Below, one piece after another: positions 1 to 63,375 of a stretch of 64,000 nucleotides of DNA. The notes beneath the pieces are model-generated. The model was not told the DNA's origin. It did not search any database and saw nothing but the letters and a program-made list of their open reading frames with translations. The translations under genes were made by a program, and so were the position numbers. Every line of letters begins with the position of its first letter. Within the stretch, counting starts at the first letter, position 1. The stretch spans positions 152,700-216,699 of the IMG/VR virus record IMGVR_UViG_3300031857_000010; one strand, 5' to 3'.

Positions 1-28
1 TGTAAATAAAATCATAAATGAAAATGAT

Positions 29-271
29 ATGTTTGTTCGTCCAAAGCGTTTAGATATTTATTCTTTACTTGAGGATCATCTTAAGAATAAAGGTGGAGAA
101 TTTGCAATTGTATATCAAATCCTTACTACAAGTGACGGTTGGAAAGAGTATAGGAATTTGACTGAAGAACAATATCAAGAAATATTAAACGAGTTAAGGG
201 AAGATCATCGAAAAAATCATGATGTTGATATTGTAAGAAAAGAGGGATCCGAGATTGTTTTAGGTTTTTAA
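29..271 (+). CDS. hypothetical protein
   Basis: 80-aa ORF with phage-like composition, convergent with the tRNA array. Confidence 0.6.
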   Translation: MFVRPKRLDIYSLLEDHLKNKGGEFAIVYQILTTSDGWKEYRNLTEEQYQEILNELREDHRKNHDVDIVRKEGSEIVLGF

Positions 272-344
272 TTACCCTATAACTTTTTTTATATCATTTT
301 AGTCAGGTTGAAGCTGACTACTTAACTATAAAACATAGTTTTTG

Positions 345-421
345 TACTCCCAAAGGGAATCGAACCCTTATGTGACCAATTACCCTTTCTACTGTGTATA
401 AGACAGAGGGGATATGGGAGC
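345..421 (-). tRNA. atypical tRNA-like gene, anticodon UAU (Ile), D-loop-like motif displaced 3' of anticodon arm
   Basis: Minus strand: acceptor GCTCCCA/TGGGAGT, stem CTGT-CTTATAC-ACAG, TAATTGGTCA, T-arm AAGGG-TTCGATT-CCCTT; no D-arm at the canonical position. Confidence 0.7.
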
Positions 422-1075
422 AATTATGTTTTCAATTAATTTATCATCAAAATTTTTACCTCTTATAAAAATCAAATTTATTTTATTTTGAGATGTGACT
501 AAGTTCAATTTTATTTTATCTTCATCGCTAAAATATCCTTTAATTTCTAAATATCTGTTAAAATCCGGTAAATAAAAATCAGGAGTATAAGTCTTTTTAA
601 CCCCGTTATTATCAACATAAGAAATATATATTTTTCTTTTCCAAATTATTTTATTCTCATTTAAAATATTTGCTACTTTCAATTCCCACGTACCCCTAAC
701 AATAAATTTTTCATTATTTATATTGCTAACTTTATACCATTTTATATTTTTAAATCCACCTACACCTAATTCTTCCAAGTTTTTAGACCTAGCCAAAGAA
801 AGTTTTTCTTTTTGTTCATTGGAAATTTTTTTACCCTTATGCTTTAATCCTATTTTTTTCTTAATTTCATCAGTTAAAATATAATCGACTCCTTTTTTTC
901 TTGTTTTATCCCATTGGTTTACTGGTTTTTTTATTATTCCATCTTTTACTTTTTGATTATAAATTTCAAAATTACTTTTACGAATTACTCTATTTGGGTT
1001 TAATTTACATGTTTTTTGGTGTGAAATTAAAGAACCTTTATTCGTTATTTCTCTATCACAAAAAATACAATTCAT
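389..1075 (-). CDS. putative free-standing homing endonuclease (NUMOD3-like motif + PD-(D/E)XK domain)
   Basis: HKGKKISNEQKEKLS NUMOD3-like motif; RGTWE...YTPDFYLP...YLEIKGY nuclease motif; sits inside tRNA array with 3' end overlapping a tRNA-like gene. Confidence 0.75.
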   Translation of the reverse strand: MNCIFCDREITNKGSLISHQKTCKLNPNRVIRKSNFEIYNQKVKDGIIKKPVNQWDKTRKKGVDYILTDEIKKKIGLKHKGKKISNEQKEKLSLARSKNLEELGVGGFKNIKWYKVSNINNEKFIVRGTWELKVANILNENKIIWKRKIYISYVDNNGVKKTYTPDFYLPDFNRYLEIKGYFSDEDKIKLNLVTSQNKINLIFIRGKNFDDKLIENIIAPISPLSYTQ

Positions 1076-1111
1076 CTTTTTTAATTATAAATATTTTATA
1101 TAATTAAATTT

Positions 1112-1193
1112 TGAGCCGATGGAGGGACTCGAACCCCCGGTGTTTGTGTTCCAGTTTACAAAACTGGTGCTGTCGCCACTGAGCCACATCGGC
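1112..1193 (-). tRNA. tRNA-Thr(UGU)
   Basis: Acceptor GCCGATG/CATCGGC, anticodon arm CCAGT-TTTGTAA-ACTGG, GTTCGAGTC T-loop. Confidence 0.9.
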
Positions 1194-1202
1194 AATAATA
1201 AG

Positions 1203-1274
1203 TTCATCCAGAGGAAGTCGAATTCCCATCTTCTGGTTCGTAGCCAGATATTCTCTCCGTTAAACTACAGGTGA
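1203..1274 (-). tRNA. tRNA-Arg(ACG), degenerate acceptor and T stems
   Basis: Anticodon arm TCTGG-CTACGAA-CCAGA; mismatches in acceptor and T stems. Confidence 0.7.
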
Positions 1275-1280
1275 ATTTTT

Positions 1281-1355
1281 GTACCCCCAGTGGAAGTCGA
1301 ATCCACAAACACCAGATCCTAAGTCTAGCCGCTTTGCCAGTTTGCGTACAGGGGC
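1281..1355 (-). tRNA. tRNA-Leu(UAG), short variable region
   Basis: GCCCCTG/TGGGGGT acceptor; CTAGA-CTTAGGA-TCTGG anticodon arm; only ~5 nt variable loop. Confidence 0.85.
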
Positions 1356-1361
1356 ATTTTA

Positions 1362-1435
1362 TGGAGGTAGGAGATGGGATCAAACCATCGTAGAAGGTTT
1401 TGCAGACCTCCACCTAGTCACTCGGTCATCCTACC
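1362..1435 (-). tRNA. tRNA-Cys(GCA)
   Basis: GGTAGGA/TCCTACC acceptor, U73, encoded CCA; GAGGT-CTGCAAA-ACCTT. Confidence 0.9.
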
Positions 1436-1446
1436 TTACATTATTG

Positions 1447-1523
1447 TTGGGATGGAGGGGATCGAACCCACATGTCACCAATTACTCTTTCAACACGTTA
1501 TCAGCGTGAGGAGATACAACCCA
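1447..1523 (-). tRNA. atypical tRNA-like gene, anticodon GAU (Ile), same rewired layout as 345-421
   Basis: TGGGTTG/CATCCCA acceptor, CACG-CTGATAA-CGTG, TAATTGGTGA, GTGGG-TTCGATC-CCCTC. Confidence 0.7.
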
Positions 1524-1582
1524 ATAAAGAAATATTTTGCGTAAAGTATCAGAAATTAATACTTTCTGCAAAAAATTTATTT

Positions 1583-1657
1583 TGATGTCCCAGCTGGAAT
1601 CGAACCAACATCATCAGAGTCAAATTCTGATATAATTAACCGTTATACTATAGGACA
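1583..1657 (-). tRNA. tRNA-Gln(UUG)
   Basis: TGTCCTA/TGGGACA acceptor; TCAGA-ATTTGAC-TCTGA. Confidence 0.88.
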
Positions 1658-1671
1658 ATATAATATTAGAG

Positions 1672-1741
1672 TGGGATAGGAAGTAATCGAAACTTCGCAC
1701 CTATGATTTACAGTCATTGTGAACTCCCCGGTCTCTATCCC
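1672..1741 (-). tRNA. atypical tRNA-Tyr(GUA) with reduced D-arm and no long variable arm
   Basis: GGGATAG/CTATCCC acceptor; ATGA-CTGTAAA-TCAT; GAAGT-TTCGATT-ACTTC. Confidence 0.65.
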
Positions 1742-1750
1742 AGATATTTG

Positions 1751-1825
1751 TACTCCCGACGGGACTCGAACCCGCAATGACCACCTTGAAAGGGTGGTGA
1801 CTTAAACCAATTTGTCCACAGGAGC
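1751..1825 (-). tRNA. tRNA-Glu(UUC)
   Basis: CCACC-CTTTCAA-GGTGG anticodon arm, canonical cloverleaf. Confidence 0.92.
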
Positions 1826-1831
1826 ATTAAG

Positions 1832-1912
1832 AGCGAGTAGAGAGAATCGAACTCTCATCTCTGGTTTGGAAGACCAGCATAATTTACTTTCGTTCCACTA
1901 TACGATACTCGC
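1832..1912 (-). tRNA. tRNA-Gly(UCC), enlarged D-loop
   Basis: GCGAGTA/TACTCGC acceptor; CTGGT-CTTCCAA-ACCAG; extra AC-GAAA-GT in D-loop. Confidence 0.88.
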
Positions 1913-1924
1913 AATTGTGCCAAC

Positions 1925-1936
1925 ATGTCAAAGAAC
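1925..1936 (-). promoter_or_regulatory. boxA-like antitermination motif
   Basis: GTTCTTTGACAT on minus strand in an inter-tRNA spacer; resembles rrn boxA (TGCTCTTTAACA type). Confidence 0.5.
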
Positions 1937-1964
1937 AACAACAGATACTCATGTTGTTTTATTG

Positions 1965-2039
1965 TTGCGGGAATGGGAATCGAACCCATGTGATTCAGCT
2001 TATGAGACTGAGCTGGAACCATCTCCAGTCCATCCCGCA
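1965..2039 (-). tRNA. tRNA-Met(CAU), initiator-like acceptor
   Basis: TGCGGGA/TCCCGCA acceptor; TCAGT-CTCATAA-GCTGA; lacks the 3 G-C anticodon-stem pairs of typical fMet. Confidence 0.85.
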
Positions 2040-2048
2040 ATTTTTAGG

Positions 2049-2121
2049 AGGAGCTACCGAGCTTTGAACTCGGGACTTAACATTGCAAATGTTATGTGTT
2101 CGCCATCTATACCATAGCCCC
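2049..2121 (-). tRNA. tRNA-Ala(UGC)
   Basis: GGGGCTA/TAGCTCC with G3:U70; TAACA-TTTGCAA-TGTTA. Confidence 0.9.
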
Positions 2122-2125
2122 ATTG

Positions 2126-2201
2126 TCTGGTAAGCCGGACTCGAACCGACATCAGCTCCTACTTCCAAGGTAGGCGAGGCAACCAATTCCTCCATTACCA
2201 G
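2126..2201 (-). tRNA. tRNA-Pro(UGG)
   Basis: CTGGTAA/TTACCAG; CCTAC-CTTGGAA-GTAGG. Confidence 0.9.
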
Positions 2202-2206
2202 TTTAG

Positions 2207-2279
2207 CGGTCTATGAGAGAATCGAACTCTCACCACCCGATAGACAGTCGGGTATCCTTAGCCGTTGGACCAATAGACC
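2207..2279 (-). tRNA. tRNA-Asp(GUC)
   Basis: GGTCTAT/ATAGACC, G73; CCCGA-CTGTCTA-TCGGG. Confidence 0.92.
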
Positions 2280-2291
2280 TTTTTTACTTTG

Positions 2292-2366
2292 TGTACCCGG
2301 AGAGATTCGAACTCTCGACTCCTGCATTAAAAGTGCAGTACTCTAATCCAGCTGAGTTACGGATAC
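2292..2366 (-). tRNA. tRNA-Lys(UUU)
   Basis: CTGCA-CTTTTAA-TGCAG; canonical D and T arms. Confidence 0.92.
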
Positions 2367-2506
2367 ATTTTGAATGCACCCGTAGGCACATTCAGTTATT
2401 TACGTTTTCGTTTTAATTTATTTTTTGTTTTCATTTCATTTCCAGTTTTCTGGGGACTGAGCCCAGCAGGTATTTGACTCAGCCCCCAACATCATCATTT
2501 TTTTTG

Positions 2507-2579
2507 CGGGGAATGTGGGCAACGATCCCACACCCTTCTGCTTAACAGGCAGTTGCTCTTCCACTTGAGCTTCTTCCCC
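2507..2579 (-). tRNA. tRNA-Asn(GUU)
   Basis: CTGC-CTGTTAA-GCAG, G73; non-canonical T-loop ATCGTTG. Confidence 0.82.
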
Positions 2580-2585
2580 CCTTTG

Positions 2586-2658
2586 TGGAACCGGAGGCTT
2601 TCGAGTCCTCGACCTTTGGATTTTCAGTCCAACGCTCTTCCATCTGAGCTACGGTTCC
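2586..2658 (-). tRNA. tRNA-Phe(GAA), first gene of the array
   Basis: GGAACCG/CGGTTCC; TTGGA-CTGAAAA-TCCAA. Confidence 0.9.
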
Positions 2659-2697
2659 AAAACAAAAAACCCCTGAACTTTTTGGGTTCAGGGGCTT
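2659..2697 (-). terminator. intrinsic terminator (attenuator) immediately upstream of first tRNA
   Basis: Minus strand CCCCTGAAC-CCAAAAA-GTTCAGGGG followed by TTTTTTGTTTT. Confidence 0.88.
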
Positions 2698-2723
2698 CCT
2701 TTATTTTTTTGGTTTTGTGTTTT

Positions 2724-2903
2724 TTACATCACCTTATTTTTAAAGTTATTTGTTCCCCTGAACCCGGTTGGTTTCTCGCTTTGTGTATTATACCCAAAAT
2801 CAAATGAACGAGAATCCACTACGGGTAGACATATTGACGCAATAGGCGTACTTATGGCTGCCTGCCAGTTATTCTTGTTAATATGATTATGAAGCGTGTT
2901 CAT
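2724..2903 (-). CDS. putative attenuator leader peptide, 59 aa (MNTLHNHINKNNWQAAISTPIASICLPVVDSRSFDFGYNTQSEKPTGFRGTNNFKNKVM)
   Basis: Translated by hand, ATG 2903 to TAA 2724; below ORF-track cutoff; A-rich initiation region; all 20 amino acids present. Confidence 0.75.
   Translation of the reverse strand: MNTLHNHINKNNWQAAISTPIASICLPVVDSRSFDFGYNTQSEKPTGFRGTNNFKNKVM
2755..2765 (-). promoter_or_regulatory. antiterminator segment inside leader ORF
   Basis: GGGTTCAGGGG is the perfect 11-nt complement of the terminator 5' arm CCCCTGAACCC (2694-2684). Confidence 0.8.
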
Positions 2904-2973
2904 TTTTGAAGACTTTATAACTTTTTTTATTCTTGTTTATTAAATAGTAAGAAATTTTATTTTTTCTTGAATG

Positions 2974-3004
2974 CAAATTTAGTCATTATTTATTTAAAAA
3001 CAAA
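2974..3004 (-). promoter_or_regulatory. Bacteroidota sigma-A type promoter for leader/tRNA operon
   Basis: TTTG-N19-TAAATTTG on minus strand matches -33/-7 consensus. Confidence 0.7.
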
Positions 3005-3061
3005 TTTCTATATTAATAAATTCATAAGTAATTGAAAATCAATTTAAAAAATTATATATAA

Positions 3062-3511
3062 TTAGAAAAATTGATTATTACTTTTTGCCAAAAATATATT
3101 AGAGTATTTTTTTTGGCCTGTAATTTCTTCTCCGCAGTAATCAGGAATATCATTTAAAAATTCATCAAACTCTATTTCAACAATACTTAGACCAGAAGGA
3201 TAAATGTCAATATCCACTTTATGATTATTAAAGACAGTAACAAAACGATTTTTTTCGAGTTTGAATTCTGAAAGATCATATAATTTAAACCCTTCTTCTT
3301 TTGGTATTAAGTATTCGAATTCATATTTAGAATAATTATTAATTTTCTGTTTATAACAAATGTGGCAATAAAAATTATTAGTAATTCTAATTCTTAATTG
3401 TTTCTTCTTATCAAGAATTAAATATCCCTGCTTGATCAATTTTGGTTCATTAAAATATGAGCCTAGATCCGGCATATATTTTAAAAGAAATTTTCTTTCT
3501 TTTTCAATCAT
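3062..3511 (-). CDS. CYTH (triphosphate tunnel) domain protein
   Basis: N-terminal EKERKFL (ExExK), IKQGYL, LRIR, EFEY, K-R, VEIEF motifs. Confidence 0.85.
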   Translation of the reverse strand: MIEKERKFLLKYMPDLGSYFNEPKLIKQGYLILDKKKQLRIRITNNFYCHICYKQKINNYSKYEFEYLIPKEEGFKLYDLSEFKLEKNRFVTVFNNHKVDIDIYPSGLSIVEIEFDEFLNDIPDYCGEEITGQKKYSNIFLAKSNNQFF

Positions 3512-3756
3512 GTTAAATAATCAAACTTTTCTCCTAAGGAATTAAATTTTTCGTGTATCTCTAAATTTTTATCAATATTTGAAATCAGGAATTTGAGAGT
3601 AAAATTTTTCCCTGTTTCTTTACTTTCAAAATATAATTCTTCATGTAGAAGTGGTATCTGTCCTTGGTATTTTCTAAGAACAATTATATCACCTTTTTTT
3701 AAATTATCATTGTGTTTTTTTACAATGAATGATTTGATTAATTTAATGTTGTCCAT
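3508..3756 (-). CDS. hypothetical protein
   Basis: ORF coupled to CYTH gene (ATGA overlap), TAnnTTTG at 3789-3796 upstream. Confidence 0.6.
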   Translation of the reverse strand: MDNIKLIKSFIVKKHNDNLKKGDIIVLRKYQGQIPLLHEELYFESKETGKNFTLKFLISNIDKNLEIHEKFNSLGEKFDYLT

Positions 3757-3815
3757 TTTAATTAATTTTATTTATTGATTGTTTATGACAAATCTATAAA
3801 AAAAAATAATAACTA

Positions 3816-4073
3816 TCAATCAAAAAATCTTTTATAAAGTATATATGGTAAGACTAAAGGCCAAAAAATACATGCAAACATGCTCAATAATAAATAAACT
3901 AATTGTAAATTATCAGTGTTGAAATTACCTAAAACTTCGTGAAGTTCATCGATTGAATTTTTGGTTCCATCATCTAATTTATTATAAACACTCTCTTCGA
4001 AAACTAGAAATGCTAAAATTCCCCACCATATTATCATTAAAATCAGACCAATTAAATATATATAATATAGCAT
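3816..4073 (-). CDS. hypothetical membrane protein
   Basis: Two hydrophobic segments. Confidence 0.65.
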   Translation of the reverse strand: MLYYIYLIGLILMIIWWGILAFLVFEESVYNKLDDGTKNSIDELHEVLGNFNTDNLQLVYLLLSMFACIFWPLVLPYILYKRFFD

Positions 4074-63302: not shown

Positions 63303-63375
63303 TTTTCCCGGTCAACGCATTTAATCAGGAAAGAGATGCAAATGTAGTTATTATTTGATAAAATCCAAAATCAAT

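Follow-up and report, generated by a model that had tools for sequence, protein, structure and literature searches.

The leader-peptide attenuators of enterobacterial amino-acid operons (trp, his, thr, leu, pheA) combine a promoter, a short translated ORF of 14-32 codons, and an RNA strand shared between an antiterminator and an intrinsic terminator, with the decision taken by the position of the ribosome while the polymerase transcribes the terminator. In the trp/his subtype, a tandem run of codons for one amino acid lies next to the switch, and an anti-antiterminator (1:2) helix makes termination the state of the untranslated leader. The pheST attenuator of E. coli, with its pheM leader and Phe codons, applies leader-peptide attenuation to a component of the translation apparatus, a synthetase, rather than to a biosynthetic enzyme. 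The coupling-dependent attenuators pyrBI and pyrE report the distance between the ribosome and the polymerase rather than the supply of one amino acid, and there a closely following ribosome prevents the terminator from forming. In Sinorhizobium meliloti, the attenuator RNA rnTrpL of a Trp operon and its 14-aa peptide peTrpL are themselves conserved and functional after release (PMC6614838, PMC7968998, PMC7298713). T-box riboswitches likewise make a terminator/antiterminator choice that reports on tRNA status, but bind uncharged tRNA directly and have no ORF. Among phages, read-through at terminators is controlled by systems such as lambda N and Q and the HK022 put RNA, which modify the polymerase through proteins or a cis RNA, and none of which is known to use a translated leader or to gate tRNA genes.

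Here, we analyze a locus in a 64,000-nt stretch of a large Bacteroidota phage (henceforth the window), in which a short conserved ORF and two mutually exclusive predicted RNA hairpins lie between a host-type promoter and a tRNA gene array. Compared with the enterobacterial amino-acid operon leaders, the genes downstream are tRNAs in a phage, the ORF is longer (59-60 codons), no anti-antiterminator helix was found, so that the predicted untranslated state is read-through rather than termination, and there is no tandem codon run next to the switch, only an Asn or Thr cluster about 110-140 nt upstream. Further, the stop codon lies 22-28 nt beyond the antiterminator strand and the peptide is conserved. 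The Rfam Thr_leader model scores only 22.5 bits here against a 55-bit cut-off. In contrast to pheST, the setting is viral rather than cellular, and in contrast to pyrBI and pyrE, the ribosome is predicted to favor the terminator. The conserved peptide and RNA recall rnTrpL/peTrpL, although we found no evidence for trans targets. An Rfam scan of positions 1-4000 returned no T-box at E of 1 or below, and the frame of the ORF is under selection, which sets the locus apart from the T-boxes.

The leader locus and its elements

All the sequence features of the locus reported in an earlier note on this DNA, namely the promoter, the ORF, the terminator abutting the first tRNA and the complement of its 5' arm within the ORF, were confirmed on the minus strand (Table 1).

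Table 1. Elements of the leader and tRNA array in the window (all on the minus strand; positions are those of the window)
Positions	Element	Features
ends at 3062	CYTH-domain gene	upstream neighbor
2974..3004	Bacteroidota sigma-A type promoter	-33 TTTG (3004-3001), 19-nt spacer, -7 TAAATTTG (2981-2974)
2904..2968	5' UTR, about 65 nt (start site inferred, not mapped)	A-rich; ends in the conserved motif AAAGTCTTCAA just before the ATG
2724..2903	Leader ORF	ATG, 59 codons plus TAA
2769..2818	Hairpin P1, candidate pause or spacer hairpin	UGG-AUUCUCG ... CGAGAA-ACCA; ends 3 nt upstream of region 2
2755..2765	Region 2, antiterminator 5' strand	GGGTTCAGGGG; codons 47-50 (G-F-R-G)
2711..2733	Hairpin P2	GGU..UGU / ACA..ACC; encloses the stop codon; apex of the extended antiterminator hairpin
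2684..2694	Region 3, shared strand	CCCCTGAACCC; pairs with region 2 (antiterminator) or, over its first 9 nt, with region 4 (terminator)
2659..2698	Intrinsic terminator	CCCCTGAAC/GTTCAGGGG; 9-bp G+C-rich core 2694-2670 (13 bp with the A/U extension in the MFE); loop CCAAAAA; 11-nt U-tract 2669-2659; -21.2 kcal/mol on its own
2586..2658	tRNA-Phe(GAA), first gene of the array	starts at the base after the U-tract; Rfam RF00005, 60.9 bits; not called by ARAGORN
1113..2579	Rest of the tRNA array	13 ARAGORN-called genes from Asn to Thr

The promoter matches the consensus quoted for this phylum (PMC7366714, PMC9723704). It is the only TTG-N17-21-TAnnTTTG match on the minus strand between 3600 and 1, and one of only two full motifs on that strand in the 64 kb. 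No TAnnTTTG motif, and hence no host-type promoter, lies between 2660 and 1100 on this strand, although phage-specific promoters cannot be excluded. A consensus scanner listed the terminator hairpin only on the opposite strand, but folding verified the sense-strand terminator. The window's second tRNA cluster (52137-51897) has no such leader.

Region 2 is a perfect 11-nt complement of region 3, that is, the whole 5' arm of the terminator (9 nt) plus 2 nt of the loop, with a predicted duplex energy of -24.9 kcal/mol. An 11-nt perfect complement to the arm plus loop anywhere in the 270-nt leader occurred in 5e-5 (mononucleotide) to 2e-4 (first-order Markov) of 20,000 shuffles, and the 9-mer GTTCAGGGG occurs exactly only at these three places (regions 2, 3 and 4) in the window. 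The leader as a whole also folds better than its shuffles (z = -3.6).

Phyletic distribution and covariation

A blastn search of the INPHARED phage genomes with positions 2400-3600 returned only a 57-nt tRNA-like hit. Searches of IMG/VR with the CYTH gene or the peptide recovered four contigs that hold the locus and are 100% identical over the leader, and are thus uninformative for comparison; one of these is a 216,699-nt contig, so this is a large phage. More distant CYTH relatives (37-50% identity) have no tRNA array downstream. A protein search with the 59-aa ORF found four diverged versions (97-80% identity) on Logan/JGI contigs, and a metagenome scan added only two more contigs of the same clade (clade 1). 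A profile search of 1.84 billion representatives found a distant homolog and a further search found two more; these form a second clade with 39-50% peptide identity to the window, on the contigs here labeled L028, L029 and L032. A third protein search, a further IMG/VR scan and a scan of 185,579 genomes gave no new lineage and no cellular copy. A 1391-aa hit proved to be a repeat-driven artifact.

Together, these define eight diverged lineages in two clades, which keep the promoter, the ORF, the complement and the terminator. In every case where the contig reaches far enough, the leader is followed by a tRNA array beginning with Phe and Asn. In all lineages of both clades, the promoter keeps TAnnTTTG, with variable 'nn', and an upstream TTG. 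The 5' UTR is nearly invariant within clade 1, where it is more conserved than the flanking genes, but is not conserved between clades, and part of it is deleted in the lineages L021/L022; the motif before the ATG is also kept in clade 2. The upstream neighbors differ: in clade 2 a bPH_2 gene sits upstream, and in L029 a Y-family-polymerase-like gene also separates the leader from CYTH.

Within clade 1, regions 2, 3 and 4 are invariant and hence uninformative. In clade 2, however, the middle base changed in all three strands at once (GGGTTCAGGGG / CCCCTGAACCC / GTTCAGGGG became GGGATCAGGGG / CCCTGATCCC / GATCAGGG): the T of region 2 became A, matched by A to T in region 3, so that the central U-A pair of the 2:3 helix became A-U while the corresponding A-U pair of the 3:4 helix became U-A, at the cost of a Phe-to-Ile replacement in the peptide. 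A second terminator pair changed from C-G to A-U. This is the covariation between antiterminator and terminator that had been named beforehand as a test of the attenuator reading, and it supports both pairings, but it rests on a single lineage split, with one three-way event plus one extra terminator pair. The 2:3 helix has 10-11 bp, with the outermost pair lost in clade 2 and the pair at the loop end lost in the lineage L015, leaving a 9-10-bp antiterminator core throughout.

P2 is present at the same place in all eight lineages with different sequences (GGU/ACC, GGC/GCC, GUUG/CAAC), and two of its pairs carry compensatory double changes. P1 was found in per-lineage folds at -9.5 to -12.4 kcal/mol in seven of eight lineages, but both its arms are almost invariant, offering no covariation, and its role in pausing is merely a guess. 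RNAalifold proposed a long helix between codons 4-11 and 30-37; however, all its pairs are invariant within clade 1 and all three changes in the lineage L016 break pairs, so we do not count it. Likewise, a 5' UTR helix of AAAGUUAU with AUAACUUU (codons 52-54) was discarded because L021/L022 delete its 5' strand.

Conservation of the leader ORF

The evidence that the ORF is read is indirect but points one way. All eight lineages keep an open frame of 59-60 codons that starts at the same ATG, runs through region 2 (codons 47-50) in the same frame, and stops at least 29 nt before region 3. Up to region 2, the only indels between the clades are 3 and 6 nt, whereas those in the UTRs have arbitrary lengths. 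In L021/L022 the stop changes from TAA to TGA in place. The dN/dS is 0.17-0.48 within clade 1 and 0.27-0.57 between clades, and the variable columns within clade 1 are distributed 8/13/19 over the three codon positions (roughly p = 0.1 by an estimated chi-square). Synonymous sites are 2-3 times more conserved than in neighboring genes (pS 0-0.29 against 0.42-0.70 in the adjacent CYTH gene for the same genome pairs). The last 7-9 codons are conserved as nucleotides but are read in a different frame in clade 2 after a 1-nt deletion. Thus, the frame matters, but much of the constraint is on the RNA. The low peptide conservation predicted in the earlier note is not seen: the two clades share 44% identity, and 21 of 59 residues of the window's peptide are invariant in a six-sequence alignment of both clades. 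Neither Pfam nor PHROGs returned a family for the peptide.

Codon composition

The earlier note had further proposed that the ORF is "pan-codon", and its counts are right: there are 35 distinct codons in the first 46 and 38 in total, with all 20 amino acids by codon 43. These values are extreme against this phage's own genes, which have 26.1 +/- 2.6 distinct codons per 46; only 0.1% of windows of its genes reach 35 in 46, 0.6% reach 38 in 59, and 0.3% hold all 20 amino acids within 43 codons. However, stop-free shuffles of the same bases give 30.9 +/- 2.1 distinct codons, with 4% reaching 35, and hold all 20 amino acids within 59 codons in 11.5% of cases, while the other two frames of the same region are just as diverse (35-37). 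The property is thus not specific to the reading frame and is largely explained by the even base composition (GC by codon position.37/.39/.41, against.39/.29/.26 in genes). In every lineage all 20 amino acids and 36-44 distinct codons occur in the 59-60 codons; clade 2 has 41-44 distinct codons, at p = 0.015-0.12 against shuffles. As 16 of the 20 amino-acid types sit at invariant positions by our count, and stop-free shuffles reach all 20 in 11-16% of cases, the presence of all 20 is not significant as a designed property.

In contrast, the start of the ORF is enriched for one residue: codons 2-12 hold 5 Asn of 11 in clade 1, and codons 2-10 hold 5 Thr of 9 in clade 2, seen in 0.02% and 0%, respectively, of same-size windows of this phage's proteins. 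This could be a classical regulatory-codon cluster or might equally reflect an A/C-rich unstructured start region.

RNA folding and a ribosome-position model

In all eight lineages the terminator-forced and antiterminator-forced folds of the leader differ by no more than about 4 kcal/mol, i.e., the two conformers are nearly isoenergetic, and the nascent RNA up to region 3 has every 2:3 pair in its minimum-energy fold. We found no conserved competitor for region 2; such a 1:2 helix defines the trp/his subtype, not the class of ribosome-mediated attenuators as a whole. In a simple footprint model (A site -15 to +14 nt, no pairs spanning the ribosome), the 2:3 helix is fully available with the A site at codon 42 or earlier, is eroded from codon 43, and is impossible from about codon 47 to the stop, where the terminator is the only stable fold. 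A ribosome parked at the stop codon does not physically cover region 2, which lies about 14 nt behind its trailing edge, so termination would then rely on steric exclusion or on timing.

Functional interpretation

We favor, at a probability of roughly 0.55, a ribosome-mediated transcription attenuator that gates read-through from a host sigma-A promoter into the phage tRNA array, with read-through as its default state. It would work like a leader-peptide attenuator and has most of the defining features, but lacks the anti-antiterminator and the adjacent codon run of the trp/his subtype. What the sequence and folding analyses establish is that the transcript can adopt two mutually exclusive folds of nearly equal energy, the terminator (3:4) and an extended antiterminator hairpin with 2:3 at its base and P2 at its apex, and that region 2 lies inside a conserved, frame-preserved ORF; translation of the ORF, the regulatory mechanism and any response of read-through to the supply of charged tRNA are inferred from sequence alone. 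In this view, as regions 2 and 3 are made before region 4 and nothing upstream competes for region 2, an untranslated leader, or one whose ribosome is held up before about codon 42, would fold into the antiterminator and the polymerase would run on into the tRNAs. A ribosome that has reached codons 43-60 when the polymerase makes regions 3 and 4 would cover region 2 or sit in the middle of the would-be hairpin, so that the terminator forms and the transcript ends at the U-tract. Output would therefore rise when translation of the leader is slow and fall when it is fast, which would make phage tRNA supply self-limiting; the signal might be all codons, or mainly the Asn (clade 1) or Thr (clade 2) codons near the start. 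The scheme presupposes that transcription and translation are coupled in the Bacteroidota hosts. Signs of leader-peptide attenuation have been reported in a Flavobacterium transcriptome (PMC9723704), making such regulation plausible in the likely host group.

The interpretation offered in the earlier note, a general sensor of tRNA shortage that deploys phage tRNAs on demand, is only partly supported: the attenuator architecture, the covariation, the absence of a host-type promoter within the array and the early-codon window for freeing the antiterminator agree with it, whereas the pan-codon component is weak and the link to anticodon-nuclease defense is pure inference. As no anti-antiterminator was found and all 20 amino acids occur in every lineage, it remains conceivable, if speculative and unlikely on present evidence, that the leader is a general gauge of translation capacity. 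A shortage of any charged tRNA, from host shut-off, starvation or a tRNA-cleaving defense such as an anticodon nuclease, would then hold the ribosome before codon 42 or so and open the whole array, and the new tRNAs would restore leader translation and close the gate again. Such an on-demand, self-limiting tRNA supply would be the first regulatory logic proposed for phage tRNA arrays; the data neither exclude nor specifically support it.

Among the alternatives, the least improbable, though still unlikely, is that the locus is an ordinary small phage gene with its own leaky terminator, whose 59-aa product is the point of the locus, and whose bistable 3' end only sets a fixed fraction of read-through into the tRNAs or stabilizes the mRNA 3' end after RNase P cuts at tRNA-Phe, without a regulatory role for translation. 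The conservation of the peptide, which exceeds that of ordinary leader peptides and may point to a function of its own, favors this, and read-through followed by RNase P cleavage and termination would give almost the same leader RNA. However, it does not explain why the competing strand sits inside the ORF, why it changed together with both terminator arms at the cost of a replacement in the peptide, or why synonymous sites are so conserved; moreover, the C-terminal codons change frame between the clades and no family or fold is known for the peptide. A dual-function leader, in which the terminated RNA of about 310 nt and/or its peptide act in trans as in rnTrpL/peTrpL, with or without cis attenuation, would account for conservation of both RNA and peptide beyond what a simple attenuator needs. 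It is compatible with our favored reading rather than exclusive of it, but is improbable, as no target is known and the 5' UTR is neither conserved between clades nor intact in L021/L022.

A switch set by a trans factor instead of the ribosome, such as a phage or host RNA-binding protein, a small RNA, or a tRNA recognizing the repeated G(T/A)TCAGGG element, also appears improbable. Regions 2 and 4 are indeed direct repeats that changed together, and several blocks are conserved at the nucleotide level regardless of frame; yet no Rfam family, T-box included, matched at E of 1 or below apart from sub-threshold noise, no candidate factor was identified, and the preserved frame, in-frame indels and conserved stop position argue that translation matters. 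Finally, chance complementarity next to a chance ORF might be invoked because AT-rich sequence folds promiscuously and the feature was selected post hoc, but this is very unlikely given the rarity of the 11-mer in shuffles, its retention in eight lineages with a compensatory change, and the retention of the ORF with in-frame indels up to the antiterminator strand.

Implications for phage tRNA arrays

Why phages carry tRNA arrays has been debated for decades, with proposals including codon compensation, replacement of tRNAs degraded during infection, and escape from tRNA-cleaving defenses (PMC10264068, PMC12409363), whereas how their expression is controlled has hardly been addressed. Full-text literature searches on attenuators, leader peptides and tRNA operons or phage tRNA genes found no report of a leader-peptide attenuator in front of tRNA genes, in phages or in cells. 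A translated leader that couples tRNA-array transcription to the current performance of the ribosome would give a concrete, testable mechanism linking tRNA supply to demand. It would extend classical attenuation to a new target (RNA genes), a new host phylum for phage regulation (Bacteroidota) and a new logic (default read-through without an anti-antiterminator), and would also provide a compact natural sensor of translation capacity.

The tRNA array and its surroundings

The first tRNA of the array, a tRNA-Phe (GAA), has an unusual T-loop (CTCGAAA) and is missed by ARAGORN. In two lineages, L017 and L032, one from each of the two clades of the leader, the same leader is followed instead by a different, canonical tRNA-Phe with 4 extra bases after the U-tract. 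Thus, the leader and the first tRNA have been recombined independently. Further, the 139-nt spacer between tRNA-Asn and tRNA-Lys holds two hairpins (GGGGCTGAGTC...CTCAGTCCCC and GAATGTGCC...GGTGCATTC), which are conserved between the two clades, with neither being followed by a U-tract. These might represent a processing signal or a small RNA. Two gaps in the array contain tRNA-like sequences that, while called by neither ARAGORN nor Rfam, were recognized by eye, and one of these may be a Tyr-GTA tRNA. A further site yielded a weak tRNA hit with Rfam (31.4 bits).

Coordinates of features in and around the tRNA array and its leader
Feature	Sequence	Position	Strand
First tRNA, Phe-GAA	window	2586-2658	-
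Canonical tRNA-Phe after the leader	L017	453-528	
Canonical tRNA-Phe after the leader	L032	1250-1325	
tRNA-Asn to tRNA-Lys spacer	window	2367-2505	-
tRNA-Asn to tRNA-Lys spacer	L029	3501-3638	
Gap with tRNA-like sequence	window	1436-1583	-
Gap with tRNA-like sequence	window	1658-1749	-
Weak Rfam tRNA hit	window	345-421	-
Endonuclease-like ORF	window	389-1075	-
Inserted ORF	L016	3463-3981	
Second full promoter motif	window	63339-63369	-
Asn-rich codons	window	2868-2900	-
Thr-rich codons	L029	3097-3123	
CYTH-domain gene	window	3062-3511	-
CYTH, Y-family-polymerase-like and bPH_2 region	L029	176-2651	
Hairpin read on the opposite strand	window	2670-2694	+

Within the leader ORF, codons 2-12 are Asn-rich (5 of 11) in clade 1, whereas codons 2-10 are Thr-rich (5 of 9) in clade 2, with both stretches being A/C-rich at the nucleotide level. 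The terminator hairpin, when read on the opposite strand, also scores as a terminator (11 pairs with G-T, T-rich tail), and this is the only orientation reported by the consensus scanner, although no convergent gene that would use it is evident. Upstream, a CYTH-domain gene is the immediate neighbor of the leader in clade 1. In contrast, in the clade 2 contig L029, it is separated from the leader by a Y-family-polymerase-like gene (IMS domains) and a bPH_2 gene. A link between CYTH, a triphosphate tunnel enzyme family, and the tRNA module remains a possibility.

Beyond the leader's own promoter, we found only one other full TTTG-N18-20-TAnnTTTG motif on the minus strand of the 64-kb window. 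If most genes here use other promoters, the tRNA leader would be one of very few units read by the unmodified host polymerase. Finally, an endonuclease-like ORF (phrog_15137, E 5e-17) separates the main array from one more tRNA-like gene, while in the relative L016 a different 172-aa ORF is inserted between tRNA-Asn and tRNA-Lys. Evidently, the array is a landing site for mobile genes.
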